64,000 bases of DNA, from positions 51,460,001 through 51,524,000 of the forward strand of contig OZ241828.1 in the NCBI GenBank assembly GCA_965202585.1. The letters run 5' to 3'. The translations under genes and the position numbers were made by a program. Position 1 is the first letter of the stretch; each line of letters starts with the position of its first letter. Positions 33,797-56,091 of the stretch are shown in pieces. The DNA is from Thalia democratica (lineage: Eukaryota). A model generated the notes under the pieces. That model was not told where the DNA came from. It made no database searches and was given only the letters and a program-made list of their open reading frames with translations.

Positions 33797-36721
33797 TCAT
33801 TTTTTCAAAGGTTCGCTACCGCTCACACTGTCACAATCACTCTCACAATCACTCTCACAGTCACTCTCACAATCACTGTCACAATCACTCTCACAATCAC
33901 TCTCACCATCACTCTCACAATAACTATCACTCTCACAATCACTCTCACAATCACTCTCACAGTCACTCTCACAATCACTCTCGCTATCACAATCACTCTC
34001 ATTGTCACAATCACTCTCGCTTTCAATGTCTGTCTCATCAACTCTTATCTTAAACAAGTCCCACTGGCTCTCGCAAGAATCTTGTATCTTGATAGAACTC
34101 TCGCATACATCTACACGGTTGCTTTCACTGTCTTTCATGCTTTCTGTTCCAAAAAGAGTTTTGACCTTAAAGCTTCCCACCTCATTGCTTTCCTTTTCAT
34201 TGAAACTCTCCGGTTCAACAGCAGGTTTTTTATAACGGCTCTGCCTTTCACCAGTTTCATCACCATCACAATCTCTGAGACTTTTTAACTCATCACCTTC
34301 ATTATCGTCGTCATCAGAGTGTTCTTCTTCACCATCGCAACTATCACTATTATCATCACTACTCTCTTCCTCTGGAGCCATCATATAACTGTCGCTCAAG
34401 CAAAGATCTGTGTAATTCAAATAGCAATTAAGTTACCAACTTGTTATAACTTTCGATTAACAAAACAGCGTATTGAATATGTTGTTGAGAAGTTTATGAA
34501 AACACGTTAAAAAATTATTAATTTAAAATACTACTTACCGTGGAGTGTAAAGTGAGGAATTTTATCTACATAGATCGTCGTGGATTCTATTGACTCTGCT
34601 TCTGTAAAAGATATTATAGTAATTTACGAAACTTAAGTTTGTAAACATTTTAGTTTGTTCTGTTAGGGACGTTTCTTGAATATGCTGCAGTGTTACAAAT
34701 TTAAAATAAGTTTTTAGTTTGTTTTTACGTTGTATTTTATTTTTTTCGTTTAATGAACTTAAAAAAGAGTTGATTACTGTAAGTCGTAACCGTTATATGT
34801 TGAAAATTCATGACTTGTTCTTACAAAACATTCTGTTAAAAGTAAGAAAAAAGGTTATTAAATAGTTTAACTTATAAAAAAAATGTAAAAATGTTTTAAA
34901 GATATACCTTCAACGGATCCGTGTTCATTTTCCGCTGCTGTTTTAATCTGATCTTCATCTTCTTCAGCAGAAGTTTCTTCATCTTCTTCAGCAGACGTTT
35001 CTTTATTTTCTTCAGCAGAACTTTCTTCATTTTCTTCAGCAGAACTTTCTTCGTTTTCTTCAGCAGAACTCTTTTCGTTTTCTTCAGCAGAAGTTTCTTC
35101 AGTAGAAGTTTCTTCAGCAAAAAATTTCTCTAGTAAAAAGGCAGCAATTTTTCTACGAACGCTCCTTGCAACTTTGATAAAAGCATCAGCCTAATTTGTT
35201 TGAAAAGTATTGTTAATAAACATTTGCAGTTAAAAGTGCAGCAATATAAAGTTAATGATTGATGTGTTAAAGTATGTCTAAAAAGTTATTATCTTTAAAC
35301 TATTTCAACTATGTTTTAAATTTTTTTAAATGTTTATACTATAAAAAGTAACTGAAAATTGAAATATGTTTTTCATTTAAAATGTTATTATAAAGAACAG
35401 TAGTGTATCAAAACAATAAGAAAGTTTGTCAGTCTAACATTTTTGGAAAAAACACATACACCATTGTTTAAAGGCAAATTCTCATCAATTGTATAATTTT
35501 AAGTGAAAAACTAAAAACTTACCAACAAAAGAACAACTTTGCTAAGAACATGAAATGAGATCGTGTTCAGTTTTTTAACGGAAATAGTGAACCAATGCTT
35601 TACAGTTTGCAGCTTAGATACAACCAAGATGAAATAAAAAGGAGATACACTTGCTATAATTATCAAAGATTTTGCTATCAGCTGAAAAATTTTGTGAAAA
35701 CCAGAAGCACAACGTTGAAAAATATACTTTAGTGCGACAATCAAAGCAGCAAACCTGTATTTAAAATATTTCTATTGTTTTTAATGATAACTAATATTGT
35801 TAGTTACTTCTAAAAACGATAGTTTATTTACTTTTTGAACTCAATGCAGTAAAATTAAATGTCTTGTACCAATACATCTAATACTGTATGGTCACTGAGT
35901 TATTTTTGTAATTATATAATAGAAATAATAACACTTAAGTATAACTTAATTTCAATTTTTCATACTATTTAGTTCTCTGTATGCTAACTTTGGCAAAAAA
36001 AGTAAATGGAAAATAATAACTAGTTAAATAAGGACCATAATATGTTTTTTAAACTATGCTAAGAGTTTTGTCTGAAATTAGTAAATAGTCTGAGACTCTG
36101 AAGTTCTAATAAAGATATTAAAATATTTGTTGTGCCTATTTCCAAAGGTTAACGCTAGTATTTTACAAACTGTTTTTTTTTTGGCTATTAATTTTTTTTA
36201 AATAGTCTATACGCAGGAGGTGAAAAAATTCTTGATTTAATTGTTTTATTATTGAATAGTTTTGATGTCAAATTTTACGTTATAATTAACTATTATAATA
36301 TAGTATTTTATATAAAAATGTTTACTAACAAGTATTTTGCTGCTATCTTTGCCAAAGAGAATTCAACTATCGTGAGGAGTTCCGAGCCTAGATAAAACTT
36401 TTCTGCAATTTTTACTCTTTTCTGTCCGTATATTGTATTTATCTGACCAATGATCGTCTTTTTTTCTTCCTTTGGTTCAGGTAAGATCCATTTTTTTATT
36501 TTATCTAAGAACTTGTCGTTGCTTTCTTCGGGTTTCTCAACGAACCCTTCCAAAAAGTCTACTACTTTTTTTTCGTATGTCACTGATTTGTCTATGTTGT
36601 CAATAACCTCAACTTCTATCATAGTATTATTCTTTACTATGCTTAAGATCAATTTTGTACTTATGATGCACAATGAGCACAAAAATAGTGCTTGAAGTAT
36701 TTTTTTCTTCATAACCGGCAT
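33797..36721 (-). CDS. Uncharacterised hydrophobic protein with acidic Ser/Glu/Asp/Cys repeat tail, copy A (526 aa, C-terminus frameshifted)
   Basis: Exons 36721-36330, 35754-35523, 35190-34908, 34601-34539, 34407-33797. GT-AG sites and phases 2,0,1,1 chain into one ORF. N-terminal hydrophobic stretch ILQALFLCSLCIISTKLILSIV, further hydrophobic segments in exon 2, then SAEE and ESDC repeats. Structure is conserved in copy B. Confidence 0.8.
33828..34020 (-). repeat. Coding 12-bp minisatellite, (ESDC)n, copy A
   Basis: GAGAGTGATTGT units on the minus strand, within the last exon of the acidic gene. Confidence 0.95.
34955..35115 (-). repeat. Coding 24-bp minisatellite, six (T/S)SAEExEE-type units, copy A
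   Basis: ACTTCTGCTGAAGAAAATGAAGAA-like units in exon 3. Confidence 0.92.
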
Positions 36722-50001: not shown

Positions 50002-52970
50002 TTTACACAAATTACCATCAACTTAGTTTCACACAATAAGTTGTGCTTCTTAAATTTATTTATAACTGAATAATCAGCAGTTTATGATCTATTTTCTCTA
50101 TACAATCTACAATAACTATTTAATGTATATACGCTCTGATATGCTGATACAATGTGCATAATCATTATTTAAGTATTGCAGAAGGTTTAGTTAAGCAATT
50201 TATAAAATATCAATAAGTTCTTGTTAAGTTTATAGTTACACCTGACGCCAATTTTTTTAAGATTCAGAAGCGTCAGTTGTTTTCAGAATTTAAAGTAAAC
50301 TTCAAATAACTCCATTTTTAACGAAATAATTATCTTAATAAAACTTATGCACTTCGACAGTAAAGAGCATTTATTTAAACTAGTTTTCTATAAAATTTAT
50401 TTTTACTATTTTTCTTATAAAAAAATAACTATAATTTATTGTTCCCTTAAATATTTAGAAATAGCTTTTGATTATCAATTACAAAAATTTAAATAAATTA
50501 AAACAAGTTTTTTAATTAGCATGCTATAGCTATTTCTTGATTGTTTTGTATTTCTATGTTCGTTTGTGTTTTTTTCTTGCTTTAGTTTTTATCACATTTT
50601 GAACTCATTTAAATTTTATGTGGTGTTTTATTACTTATTCCATCCAATTTTGATAGAATTAATAATCTTACTTAACAACGTTTTAGTAAAACTATTTTAA
50701 TTTTAACAATCATAAAGGTAACTACAATTTTTTTATTGCATTTCGAATATAGAGTTACATAATAAACAAAAAAAAATTGTTAGTTTATACTAAATAAAAT
50801 CATTACAACTTTTTTGATTTCTAAAAAATTGTTGAGTTGTAGTAGTAACAAATAAATCCAATGTTTACAAATAAACAAATACAAATTAGACCTTTATTGA
50901 ATTTTTATGAAAATAAATGTAAGTTAGTCTACTGTAAATAAAATTAAAACAGTATCAAAGCAAGCAAACAAACATTCATTGTTCTTACTACTTACAAAAA
51001 GTGTTTTTTTATAAACTATCTTTATCTTGAAATTTATGCTGAAAGGCTAGACACTAAAGTATGATTTAAAACTCTGGGTAAGCTGGATAAATTACATGGG
51101 TTAACTACACAATAAAGCTTAATAACATTGTTTTGTCTAAGGTGATTTAGGGATATGTGTATCAAACTACGCATTTAATACAAGTTTTTGTTTTACTTTT
51201 TCAGTATATCAAAAAGTATAAAACAAGTAAACTTTGAAATCTTTAACACGCTAAAGTAAAGTGTTCTTATCAAGAGCGAGCTTTCTTTTTTTTTTGAGTT
51301 CTATTGCAAAAGCTTTATACCAAACTAGACTTAAATGTTAAAACTTTATTAATCGCTTGTACATAATTAGTGAATTTTATAAATTTTTATTTTAGATATG
51401 TATATGAAAATATTTTAATGTAAAAGAACAATAAGTTATAGAATCTTTTTAGCCTGTGAAAAAAAAACAACTTTAAATATTGTTATATCTAGCTTTTGTA
51501 AAAGTTTAATTTTTTAGTTCAAAAAAGAAAAAAAAAAAACTGGTAGTAAACGAAATTGTAGTTTTCTTTATTGATTTAGGTTTATTGCATTTAAAAACTA
51601 TATGAGCTTTTTAATACCCATTTTTGGTCTTAAGAACGATATTTTTACTTAAACAGTTTTTGTTTATCCTTAAATTGACAAAGCTTGAGCTTTAGTAGTT
51701 TTGAAATTAAAACGATTATTCTATTTAAACATAAAGTGTTTCGCCGCGTAAAATTTAGATTTACTTAATTAAAATGAAATAAAAAACTGGAAGTACACAA
51801 AGTAATCTACTAAACTTCTTTTTACCTACTAGATGTAATAAGTTCCGGTTAAAAAAAACTTATAGTTGTTATGTTTTCTTAGTTTTGTCGTTAATGATAA
51901 ATATTAGTTATATATAAGATGTATAATCATGATAAATAACAATTCAGCAATGATTGTTGTTGTGTGCTCATGTATTTTTATACCTTTGTTAAATAATTGC
52001 ATAAAGAAAGATTTTATTCTACAATGTTATAGTTTTACAAAGAATAACTTTTTTTTTTTAATTATTCTTGTTGAAAAAAAAAATAATAGTAATGATTATG
52101 TTTATAGGGGGTATTTGTGTTATACATTTTTTTCATACAGCTAAAAAACTTGTTGGAAATATGCTAAAGGCAGCATTTCTTTTAAATCCAGTAAACTAAA
52201 AAAAAACATTTTCAACAAAAATATCTGTATAAAATTCTTAACAAATGTTGTACTTTTTAAATCCTTGATACCAATTTTTTTTACTAACTAAATCTACGTA
52301 TAACTGTGTCGTTATTTCGAAGATTGAATAGATATTTTCAAGTCTTAAACTAAAGAAGGAGAATTTAAGGTTTGCTTAATCAGTTTTTTTTTGTAGACTT
52401 AAAACTAATGAACTAAGTTTTAAAACTTGTTTAATGTAAAAGTCAGTAAACAATAAAAATGCTTAAAATTTTACCAATACTCTTATATTTTTGTAACTAT
52501 ACAGAGAGTAGACAAAAAATCCTATATGTTTTACAATTATACTTTTATTGAAAAAATTCAAAAATTCTTGCTTTTTAAGTTAAAATACAAAGCTATTGGT
52601 CTATTTTTTACATTTTTATTGTAAGTTACTTTAAATATTGAAGCCTTATTGACCATTATCTACACAAAAAGATAAACAAGATACACAATTGCGCTTAAAA
52701 ATACTTTTTATAAGTAAAACAAAATCATTTTGTTCAAAAAATTACTTTAAGGAATTTTAGCGTGACGCCTCTAATATATGTTCTACTTTTTTAATACTTT
52801 TGCTCTAAAATGATGTTAATCAATAAAGTATCAGATTTAAGCAAAATACTTTTTACCAGCTTAACAATTTATTAATAAAACAAATTATTTTCATTTATTG
52901 ACTGTTTATTTTATGTTGTTCATTAAAATAATTATTTTCATATCCAAATATGTTCACATTTAAAACCCTC

Positions 52971-55900
52971 TCACCACTCATCATCACTATCAACCACACT
53001 CTCACGCTTTTTCGTTGTCCACATTGCATTCATTTTTTCAAAGGTTGCTTTATTGCTTTCTGAAAGCATACACACTTTATGCTCGTCGGTGTAACGGTAC
53101 GAGACAAATTTATCGCTACCGCTCACACTGTCACAATCACTCTCACAATCACATTCACAGTCACTCTCACAATCACTCTCACAATCACTCTCACAATCAC
53201 TCTCACAGTCACTCTCACAATCACTCTCACAGTCACTCTCACAGTCACTCTCACAACCACTCTCGCTATCACATTCATTCTCATTATCACAATCACTATC
53301 ATTGTCACAATCACTCTCGCTATCAATGTTTGTCTCATCAACTCTTATCTTAAACAAGTCCCACTGGCTCTCGCAAGAATCTTGTATCTTGATAGAACTC
53401 TCGCATACATCTACACGGGTGCTTTCACTGTCTTTCATGCTTTCTGTTACAAAAAGAGTTTTGACCTTAAAGCTTCCCACCTCATTGCTTTCCTCTTCAT
53501 TGAAACTCTCCGGCTCAACAGCAGGTTTTTCATAACGGCTCTGCCTTTCACCAGTTTCATCACCATCACAATCTCTGAGACTTTTTAACTCATCACCTTC
53601 ATCACCGTCGTCATCAGAGTGTTCTCCTTCACCATTGCAACTCTCACTATCTTCATCGCTACTCTCTTCCTCCGGAGCCATCATATAACTGTCACTCAAG
53701 CAAAGGTCTGTGTAATTTAAATAACAATAAGGTTACCAACTTATTATAATTTTCGATTAACAAAACAGCTAATTGAACATGTTGTTGAGTAGTTTATGAA
53801 AACACGTTAAAAAATTATTAATTTAAAATACTACTTACCGTGGAGTGTAAAGTGAGGAATTTTATCTACATAGACCGTCGTGGATTCTATTGACTCTGCT
53901 TCTGTAAAAGATATTATAGTAATTTACGAAACTTAAGTTTGTAAATATTTTAGTTTGTTCTGTTAGGGACGTTTCTTGAATATGCTGCAGTGCTACAAAT
54001 TTAAAATATGTTTTTAGTTTGTTTTTACGTTGTAAATTATTTTTTCGTTTAATGAACTTAAAAAAGAGTTGATTACTGTAAGTCGTAACCGTTATATGTT
54101 GAAAATTCATGACTCGTTCTTACAAAACATTCTGTTAAAAGTAAGAAAAAATGTTATTAAATAGTTTAACTTATGAAAAAATGTAAAAATGTTTTAAAGA
54201 TATACCTTCAACGTATCCGTGTTCATTTTCCGCTGCTGTTTTAATCTGATCTTCATTTTCTTCATCAGAAGTTTCTTCATTTTCTTCAGCAGAAGTTTCT
54301 TCATTTTCTTCATCAGAAGTTTCTTCGTTTTCTTCATCAGACGTTTCTTCATTTTCTTCAGCAGAAGTTTCTTCATTTTCTTCATCAGAAGTTTCTTCAT
54401 TTTCTTCATCAGACGTTTCTTCATTTTCTTCAGCAGAAGTTTCTTCAGTAGAAGTTTCTCCACTTTCTCCAGTAGAAGTTTCTTCAGCAAAAAATTTCTC
54501 TAGTAAAAAGGCAGCAATTTTTCTACGAACGCTTCTTGCAACTTTGATGAAAGCATCAGCCTAATTTTTTTAAAAAGTATTGTTAATAAACATTTGCAGT
54601 TAAAAGTGCAGCAATATAAAGTTAATGATTGATGTGTTAAAGTATGTCTAAAAAGTTATTATCTTTAAACTATTTCAACTATGTTTTCAATTTTTTTAAA
54701 ATGTTTATACTATAAAAAGTAACTGAAAATTGAAATATGTTTTTCATTTAAAATGTTATTATAAAGAACAGTAGTGTATCAAACCAATAAGAAAGTTTGT
54801 CAGTCTAACATTTTAGGAAAAAACACATACACCATTGTTTAAAGGCAAATTCTCATCAATTGTATAATTTTAAGTGAAAAACTAAAAACTTACCAACAAA
54901 AGAACAACTTTGCTAAGAACATGAACTGAGATCGTGTTCAGTTTTTTAACGGAAATAGTGAACCAATGCTTTACAGTTTGCAGCTTAGATACAACCAAGA
55001 TGAAATAAAAAGGAGATACACTTGCTATAATTATCAAAGATTTTGATATCAGCTGAAAAATTTTGTGAAAACCAGAAGCACAACGTTGGAAAATATATTT
55101 TAGTGCGACAATCAAAGCAGCAAACCTGTATTTAAAATATTTCTATTGATTTTAATGATAAGTAATACTGTTAGTTATTTCTAAAAACGAGACTTTATTT
55201 ACTTTTTGAACTCAATGCAGTAAAATTAAATGTCTTGTACCAATACATCTAATACTGTATGGTCACTGAGTTATTTTTTTAATTACATAATAGAAATAAT
55301 AACACTTAAGTATAACTTAATTTCAATTTTTCATACTATTTAGTTCTCTGTATGCTAACTTTAGCAAACAAAGTCAATAGAAAATAATAACTAGTTATAT
55401 AAGGACCATAATATGTTATTTAAACTATGTTAAGAGTTTTGTCTGAAATTAGTAAATAGTCTGAGACTCTGAAGTCCTAATAAATATATTAAAATATTTG
55501 TTGTGCCTATTTCCAACGGTTAACGCTAGTATTTTACAAACTGTTTTTTTTTTGGCTATTAATTTTTTTAAATAGTCTATACGCAGGAGGTAAAAATTTT
55601 CTTGATTTAATTGTTTTATTATTGAATAGTTTTGATGTCAAATTTTACGTTATAATTAACTATTATAATATAGTATTTTATATAAAAATATTTACTAACA
55701 AGTACTTTGCTGCTATCTTTGCCAAAGAGAATTCAACTATCGTAAGGAGTTCCGAGCCTAGATAAAACTTTTCTGCAATTTTTGCTCTTTTCTGTCCGTA
55801 TATTGTATTTATCTGACCAATGATCGTCTTTTTTTCTTCCTTTGGTTCAGGTACGATCCATCTTTTTATTTTATCTAAGAACTTATCGTTGCTTTCTTCG

Positions 55901-56091
55901 GGTTTCTCAACGAACCCTTCCAAAAAGTCTACTACTTTTTTTTCGTATGTCACTGATTTGTCTATGTTGTCAATAACCTCAACTTCTATCATAGTATTAT
56001 TCTTTACTATGCTTAAGATCAATTTTGTACTTATGATGCACAATGAGCACAAAAATAGTGCTTGAAGTATTTTTATCTTCATAACCGGCAT
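52971..56091 (-). CDS. Uncharacterised hydrophobic protein with acidic Ser/Glu/Asp/Cys repeat tail, copy B (592 aa, apparently full length)
   Basis: Exons 56091-55700, 55125-54894, 54560-54206, 53901-53839, 53707-52971. Same splice phases as copy A, open throughout, ends ...KKRESVVDSDDEW-stop. Confidence 0.83.
53128..53330 (-). repeat. Coding 12-bp minisatellite, (ESDC)n, copy B
   Basis: Same unit, different variant order from copy A. Confidence 0.95.
54250..54490 (-). repeat. Coding 24-bp minisatellite, eight TS(A/D)EENEE units, copy B
   Basis: Units run A,D,D,A,D,D,A,D, i.e. a 72-bp higher-order repeat. Confidence 0.92.

Follow-up and report, generated by a model that had tools for sequence, protein, structure and literature searches.

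A minus-strand gene at 56091..52971 of a 64,000-nucleotide stretch of Thalia democratica DNA (contig OZ241828.1; the whole stretch is called the window below, and gene coordinates are positions in it) raises the question of what a protein does when its last 360 residues form an acidic, serine-rich tail, built in part from short tandem repeats that place a cysteine at every fourth residue. We find that the gene is real and transcribed in nature, and that it is one member of a previously undescribed multigene family with at least a dozen copies. Our reading of its product, which we hold tentatively and give a little less than an even chance, is that of a secretory, membrane-held protein whose disordered polyanionic tail would lie in the cytosol and serve docking and cation binding.

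The gene model comprises five exons, all on the minus strand and separated by four introns that are all of the GT..AG type, with a coding sequence of 1779 nt that translates to 592 aa. An in-frame stop lies a few codons 5' of the ATG at 56091, and an AG that follows a T-run 8 nt upstream of this ATG is a sequence that could be a trans-splice acceptor. Exon 1 (55700..56091) encodes aa 1-130 plus 2 nt of the next codon and holds the start codon, a signal-like hydrophobic segment at aa 8-29 and the family-defining N-domain, which is helical and free of Cys; the exon's donor TT/GTTAGT is homologous to TT/GTGAGT in four paralogues. Exon 2 (54894..55125; aa 131-208) encodes a lysine-rich hydrophobic/amphipathic region, with 27-39% identity in paralogues L015-L017 and L019 (the labels L012-L024 denote paralogous loci), and the net charge over aa 116-232 is +14. 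Exon 3 (54206..54560; aa 209-326) encodes a conserved basic juxta-hydrophobic helix, A-D-A-F-I-K-V-A-R-S-V-R-R-K-I-A-A-F-L-L-E-K-F-F, and behind it the first acidic block, where Tandem Repeats Finder (TRF) reports 8.2 copies of a 24-bp repeat encoding TS[A/D]EENEE (54250..54447, 93% matches). Exon 4 (53839..53901; aa 327-347) is short and carries the conserved motif ..ESTT.YVDKIPHFTLH. Exon 5 (52971..53707; aa 348-592 and the stop) contains the DLCLSDSYMMAPEEESSDEDS motif, a disordered acidic stretch with Cys, the 12-bp CESD repeat (C-E/D-S-D)n (53126..53301, 14.7 copies by TRF) and a 54-aa C-terminal module (52974..53135) that ends in KKRESVVDSDDEW and is near-identical in nucleotides among paralogues. 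A putative poly(A) signal, AATAAA, stands at 52894..52899 on the same strand, about 75 nt 3' of the stop, and its surroundings are kept in all aligned paralogues.

The tail itself (aa 233-592, 360 aa) is 52% E+D+S, has a net charge of -110 and contains 21 Cys. Its two repeat arrays, at aa 247-311 and 479-540, are both C-terminal to all of the hydrophobic segments (aa 8-216). It holds 47 [ST]xx[DE] sites, 14 SxE sites and one N-x-S/T sequon, which bears out an earlier remark that the repeats fit the CK2 and S-x-E phosphorylation motifs, and it is bracketed by two conserved multibasic sites, RSVRRK and KKR. Both the gene model and TRF agree with the outline given by a first-pass annotation of this DNA: a five-exon gene with a signal- or anchor-like N-terminus, an E/D/S tail of more than 300 aa and two repeat systems. 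The stop codon is embedded in a GTGAGT-like sequence in all paralogues (52960-52975 in the window), and in the gene here a 7-nt deletion directly after the stop turns this into GTGAGA. A hidden sixth exon behind such a donor-like sequence was considered and judged improbable, because the conserved AATAAA follows about 75 nt later and homology among the paralogues ends there.

Evidence for transcription comes from contigs of a marine metatranscriptome; two metatranscriptome runs hold parts of the stretch, as do DNA runs of two organisms. Over the gene, the RNA contigs cover exons only and the introns are at zero depth. One RNA joint, 53901/54206, corresponds exactly to intron 3 and fixes the 3' end of exon 3, while a loose contig end at 53839 continues into exon 5, agreeing with its first 23 nt at all but 2 positions, and so supports intron 4; both junctions of exon 4 therefore have RNA support. 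A further joint, 55131/55706, connects exon 1 to exon 2 in frame and at the length of the model, but it lies 6 nt off and reads K-Y-R, not K-Y-L. Taken literally it implies a non-canonical GT..AA cut, with the last six intron bases (ATACAG) re-used. This joint is probably the transcript of a variant copy, placed on a look-alike intron end, and not alternative splicing. Altogether three of the four splice junctions have RNA support; intron 2 has none, and the paralogues share it in position, splice sites and frame. In the metatranscriptome contigs no RNA 3' end was observed near the AATAAA. Had the locus yielded no spliced transcripts, the first-pass annotation would have lost its footing; spliced RNA is present, with intron 3 exact.

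How isolated is this gene? A search of the 802-Mb assembly with the exon-1 peptide gives at least 14 matches. Four near-identical ones are at 51.496, 51.516, 51.538 and 51.554 Mb of contig C4, eight more lie on C4 between 51.97 and 52.78 Mb (53-88% identity), one is on contig C717, and distant copies occur on C6 (34% identity) and C7 (29% identity). The C4 copies spread across 1.3 Mb; a tblastn search with the spliced protein finds all five exons in the C4 paralogues, and the genome contains 11 intact C-terminal modules. The C7 paralogue (L021:1761-3899, minus strand, C7 17.49 Mb) joins the same N-domain to a 712-aa open reading frame (ORF) of (ESCDEEEENIGEIEE)n, in about 45 units of 15 residues with one Cys per unit, and the C6 paralogue (L020:3576-4340, minus strand, C6 56.82 Mb) joins it to a (DDELDDEVDGEV)n tail without Cys and keeps an exon that ends in KQIPHFTLE, followed by DLGLNYGYPM. 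Because the C6 and C7 paralogues retain the N-domain and the exon-4 motif and carry different hyper-acidic repeats, the acidic tail as such is a constant of the family. In all, the family has four constants: a signal-like start, a helical N-domain, a hydrophobic/basic region and a hyper-acidic repeat tail interrupted by IPHFTL..DL.L. One further locus, L024:6405-7206 (plus strand, C4 52.350 Mb), is a pseudogene of exons 4-5 with several in-frame stops.

Outside this genome, searches were made exon by exon. A word-index search with exon 1, which covers proteins of 72-228 aa, matched 11 unnamed ENA marine-metagenome fragments (54-90% identity), and two of these were traced to Tara Oceans contigs with the same exon border. 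An exhaustive hidden Markov model search without a size limit (22-sequence profile, 1.84 billion representatives) gave 11 matches, namely ten short unnamed ORFs and one 2808-aa multi-saposin protein (P0016). The source of this last, summed match is a single helix of the N-domain that resembles the first saposin helix. A saposin B-type domain is a four-helix unit with six Cys in three disulfides; the N-domain alignment has no conserved Cys, none of the six defining ones is present, and when A1 was compared with 17 saposin repeats the hhalign probability came to 1.5% over 29 columns. We reject a saposin identity and regard the match as chance similarity. Pfam, run with all exons and 22 N-domain homologues, returned sub-threshold noise only (tRNA_anti-like, PARP); the match to Trypan_PARP (PF05887; 18.2 bits, E 0.0026, against a gathering threshold of 100 bits) covers the CESD repeat only and is rejected as compositional. 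A Pfam-A scan of the four long exons at E<=1 found no metal-binding family, a PDB sequence profile search found nothing below E 0.09, and the ESM Atlas, searched by features, gave no usable match for exon 1 or exon 5. That the protein belongs to no recognisable family and is lineage-specific, as first proposed, thus agrees with Pfam, PDB sequences, the ESM Atlas and the 1.84-billion-protein profile search, with unnamed marine-metagenome fragments as the sole relatives. So far the family seems confined to this marine planktonic animal and its close relatives.

We now ask which parts of the protein selection holds in place, using synonymous (dS) and non-synonymous (dN) divergence among paralogues and their ratio omega. 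Exon 1 is under purifying selection, with dS of 0.13-1.4 and omega of 0.23-0.57; for the non-repeat middle of exon 5 the values are about 0.5-0.66 and 0.43-0.71. Exon 4 together with the first 22 codons of exon 5 combines dS of up to about 1 with dN of about 0 (exon 4 against L015 and L019: dN about 0.045, dS 0.8-1.1). The peptide ESTT.YVDKIPHFTLHDLCLSDSYMMAPEEESSDEDS, which runs from exon 4 into the start of exon 5, is under strong protein-level constraint. The strongly conserved short motifs of the tail are a IPHFTLHDLCLSDSYMM-acidic cluster, LFKIRVDET and the C-terminal KKRESVVDSDDE[W/C], and Ser is placed inside D/E clusters in the conserved SSDEDSES and ESVVDSDDE. Compared by eye, none of four known motif types fits these: FFAT-like, LIR (LC3-interacting region), YxxPhi or dileucine. 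AlphaFold 2 predicts the non-repeat tail without secondary structure (predicted local distance difference test, pLDDT, 55) and the N-domain as helices only (pLDDT 52), and the non-repeat tail fits a disordered region that carries short linear motifs.

The end of the gene shows a different pattern. In the last 51 codons both site classes are conserved, with dS of 0.04-0.14 versus about 0.5 elsewhere; the module is 91-96% identical in amino acids across the 10 other intact copies, and nucleotide identity among paralogues collapses about 18 nt past the stop. RNA structure was considered as the cause of the synonymous conservation and rejected, the module folding no better than shuffled sequence (z = +0.53). 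In another species, the ORF P0021 (a single fragment) is 56% identical in this module and keeps KKRESVVDSDDE, ending in C and not W. We conclude from these comparisons that the module has been homogenised by gene conversion in this genome, atop a shorter motif conserved at the protein level. Concerted evolution is thus plainly visible here, and limited to 170 nt of coding sequence. The sequence after the stop resembles the CESD unit, and the module is flanked by repeat-like DNA on both sides, an arrangement that probably favours conversion. Diverged module copies are also found at L023:4559-4943 (minus strand, C6 6.616-6.624 Mb), where ..DKFV.YRYNDE..ESV.DSDDEW-stop, at 57-60% identity and with deletions, is attached to a non-acidic 94-aa ORF; these may reflect module shuffling or decayed fragments.

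On which side of the membrane would such a tail lie? We estimated insertion energies (dG) by summing a simple Hessa-type biological hydrophobicity scale, without position weighting. The sole clearly insertion-competent segment of the protein is aa 8-29, at about 0 kcal/mol; the later stretches (aa 118-144, 156-180 and 195-216) are lysine-rich and marginal, at +2.6 to >+4 kcal/mol, and their hydrophobicity is not retained in paralogue L016. In L019, L020 and L021, by contrast, a good span lies exactly at the end of exon 2 (dG -0.3, -1.5 and -0.6), and the distant paralogues have classical short signal peptides. Just after the span position the C4 copies conserve a basic helix, ..IKVARSVRRKIAAFLLEKFF, which fits the positive-inside rule. 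The simplest ancestral architecture would run from a signal peptide through a luminal helical domain and a single span to a basic stop-transfer sequence and an acidic tail in the cytosol, and for the gene here we modestly prefer a type I protein with a cytosolic tail over one with a luminal tail. Several observations weigh against this preference. Within the subfamily of this gene, the homologue of the ancestral span includes His, Lys and Asp and has a dG above +4; the best alternative span is marginal (+2.6); and the L016 subfamily has no segment below +4. Given how weak the later spans are in the subfamily and in L016, the protein could be soluble or peripheral, with its tail in the lumen. 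The description "membrane-tethered" in the first-pass annotation is accordingly weakened: the hydrophobic segments are weak in the gene's subfamily, although a clear span exists at the homologous place in distant paralogues.

This luminal possibility can be made into a full explanation, in which a cleaved signal or a type II anchor delivers a secreted or luminal polyanion, a Golgi kinase phosphorylates its S-x-E sites, its Cys are cross-linked, and the product binds or condenses Ca2+ in a matrix (granules, mucus, tunic or mineral). The N-terminal segment alone is clearly hydrophobic in the subfamily, paralogues of the L016 type have no span-competent segment, the tail carries its 14 S-x-E sites, and the conserved RSVRRK and KKR could, by eye, be convertase sites. 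We nevertheless think it unlikely, if a serious contender: distant paralogues have a good span and a basic cluster at the homologous position, 21 unpaired-looking Cys in a disordered region, with no constraint on the parity of copy number, would be unusual in an oxidising compartment, and there is just one N-x-S/T sequon in the 360-aa tail. The same multibasic sites enter another proposal, that the gene encodes a precursor of cationic amphipathic (antimicrobial-like) or other peptides, with the acidic tail as a neutralising pro-region cut away at those sites. Precursors with a signal, a cationic peptide and an anionic extension are described for ascidian peptides, and here a +14 mid region with amphipathic helices precedes a -110 tail bracketed by RSVRRK and KKR. 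Yet the mid region, at about 120 aa, is far above the size seen in known peptide precursors, neither Pfam nor the exhaustive profile search found homology to such families, and the tail has conserved motifs of its own that a mere pro-region would not need; we rate the proposal as highly improbable.

Returning to a secretory protein with a cytosolic tail, the sequence of events would be as follows. The protein would enter the secretory pathway through its N-terminal signal peptide, presumably cleaved, carrying behind it the Cys-free helical N-domain of about 90 aa, and the basic hydrophobic region would hold it in or on the membrane. With the predicted type I topology, the C-terminal two-thirds would lie in the cytosol, where fast-changing repeat blocks would alternate with a few strongly conserved short motifs. 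The tail would act as a polyanion, its charge raised further by phosphorylation; the conserved motifs would serve as docking sites for partners in sorting or tethering, and the carboxylate/thiol blocks would bind cations with high capacity and low specificity. Placement matters for the chemistry, as a cytosolic tail would offer 47 CK2-type sites and reduced thiols, and a luminal one Cys open to cross-linking together with 14 S-x-E sites. Cations could plausibly be bound in both settings.

Among the known systems closest to this picture are the acidic-cluster cytosolic tails of sorting receptors and convertases of the furin and CI-MPR type, which are phosphorylated by CK2 and bind PACS-1. With the family as predicted here, these proteins have in common a signal peptide, a luminal domain and a membrane span backed by basic stop-transfer residues; in both, Ser lies inside D/E clusters, which the tail here has in abundance (47 [ST]xx[DE] sites). 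They differ in being tens of residues long and not 360, and in lacking Cys repeats; the orientation of the tail here is also a prediction, with a span-competent segment plus basic cluster in L019, L020 and L021 and a homologous segment that is not span-competent in the gene's subfamily. In composition the nearest analogue is CRAM of Trypanosoma brucei, likewise a membrane protein made up largely of short Cys/acidic repeats in a long tandem array. The CRAM repeats precede the membrane span and face outward, and a short cytosolic tail follows; here the hydrophobic segments (aa 8-216) precede both repeat arrays, so that the order is reversed and the protein is not CRAM-like in architecture. There is no sequence relation either: no search returned CRAM, and the comparison is between a protist and an animal. 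CRAM has been called a candidate HDL receptor, a role that is still debated (PMC9719944). Extreme negative charge, low complexity, phosphorylatable Ser and variation in repeat length are shared more broadly with high-capacity Ca2+-binding acidic proteins (calsequestrin, histidine-rich Ca-binding protein, junctate and the chromogranins) and with acidic biomineral matrix proteins (Asprich, Aspein, DSPP and coral acid-rich proteins). All of these belong to the lumen or are secreted, most are rich in Asp and lack periodic Cys, and no homology between them and the protein was found.

The periodic cysteines deserve separate consideration. The first-pass annotation likened Cys at every fourth residue to C-x3-C metal sites and proposed a cation or metal chelator or mineralisation scaffold, with vanabins or mineral-matrix proteins as comparisons. 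In favour of a dedicated C-x3-C chelator, Cys is present in about 90% of repeat units across 11 copies, and a Cys-rich and acidic composition recurs in P0021 of another species. Quantitative inspection of the spacing argues the other way. The strict C-x3-C run of the gene comprises 9 Cys (aa 499-531) and follows three 6-residue spacings; spacings in the tail are mostly 4 and 6, with two C-x-C only, and about 22% of residues in the repeat region are Cys, compared with 6% over the whole tail. Across the 11 copies the CESD region is 41-109 aa long and has 5-22 Cys, at spacings of 4 residues (116 times), 6 (29), 8 (12), 2 (3) and 10 (2), and in P0021 the Cys/acidic region is irregularly spaced. 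Because spacing is irregular in P0021 and Cys number varies among paralogues, the exact period of four is young, a product of recent 12-bp repeat expansion and no conserved structural feature; what is conserved is the composition of Cys and carboxylate. The comparison with C-x3-C sites is therefore weak. The 24-bp repeat is also confined to the closest subfamily: close paralogues have 4-7 units of it, and L015-L019, more distant on C4, have lost or never had any. Within the CESD repeat (53126-53301 and paralogues), the Glu codons comprise 167 GAG and 15 GAA, against a genomic G+C content of about 27%, a bias that is a signature of repeat homogenisation keeping the units identical.

Nor do the particular families fit. 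Vanabins resemble the protein in being Cys-rich tunicate proteins that bind metal; they are small, basic, helical proteins with about 18 Cys, fully disulfide-bonded. The tail here has no Pfam match, a net charge of -110 and predicted disorder, and a vanabin identity is rejected. Nor is there support for membership among the mineral-matrix proteins, and we know of no mineralised tissue in the presumed host group. Metallothionein-type proteins have C-C, C-x-C and C-x-x-C clusters at about 30% of residues and few other side-chain ligands; with Cys at 22% of the repeat and spacings mostly of 4, 6 and 8, a metallothionein- or phytochelatin-like assignment is likewise rejected. Since period four is not conserved across species, Cys number ranges from 5 to 22 among intact paralogues, the C6 paralogue's tail has no Cys at all, no metal-binding Pfam family matches and the composition is acidic, unlike that of the basic vanabins, we consider a dedicated C-x3-C chelator decidedly improbable. 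Equally a long shot is a broader idea, that these lineage-private, membrane-tethered thiol/carboxylate polyanions are something like a gene-encoded, membrane-bound counterpart of phytochelatin. At the surface of an organelle they would then sequester or hand over metal ions (Zn, Cu, Cd, Fe or V), and repeat expansion, together with unequal crossing-over and gene conversion across a dozen paralogues, would tune their capacity quickly.

What the analysis yields directly is a verified gene model and a family definition (the N-domain together with the conserved tail motifs), useful for annotating this genome and its relatives. Should a function be demonstrated, the small set of membrane-bound polyanions would gain a new animal protein family, and the case would show how a tail of micro- and minisatellite repeats can stay useful while its length changes quickly. 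The finding does not yet bear on a long-standing question.

It remains to consider whether the repeats matter at all, a question to which the genomic setting of the gene speaks. The 19.7-kb tandem duplication in which it lies is part of a four-unit array at C4:51490117-51555200 (window 26000-64000 and beyond), with unit lengths of about 19.3, 21.9 and 16.7 kb, and the 3' piece of a pecanex gene is likewise present four times (C4 51.490, 51.509, 51.531 and 51.548 Mb). The preceding unit holds a paralogous copy with the same five exons (33797..36721, minus strand; 526 aa, ending ..SGSEPLKK-stop). In this copy and in the third (L012, C4:51532300-51538500), the same 67-nt deletion shifts the reading frame of the C-terminal module (window 33797-33870), while the second copy, which is the gene here, and the fourth are full length; a DNA contig joint in run X3, 53045/53113, shows the deletion as well. 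The alternating pattern of truncated, full, truncated and full copies suggests that a two-unit block was duplicated. The gene is indeed the only complete one in the duplicated unit, as first noted, the rest of which has no other gene-sized ORF. The further idea that it is why the duplication persists is weakened and has no positive support, as the array counts four units and in two of them the gene copy has lost the conserved C-terminal module through the frameshift.

These data bear on a neutral account, in which slippage at replication and unequal exchange in an AT-rich genome produce the repeats as by-products, the array is young and partly decaying, and the N-domain and a few motifs alone matter. 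Among the four copies, exons are no more alike (95-97.7% identical) than introns (95.4-98.2%), repeat number is highly variable, the C-terminal module owes its likeness to gene conversion and not to conservation by deep selection, and the pseudogene L024 has stops; with two of four array copies truncated, part of the array may be decaying, which also counts against our preferred cytosolic-tail reading. Still, even within the array the non-repeat parts show omega of 0.4-0.6, at a proportion of synonymous differences of 0.03-0.06, so that selection there is detectable if modest; moreover, an acidic tail is found in every family member, distant ones included, and the gene is transcribed in nature. 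On balance we find the neutral account rather improbable. The truncated copy at 36721..33797 of the window also reads CATAAA where its paralogues have the conserved AATAAA.

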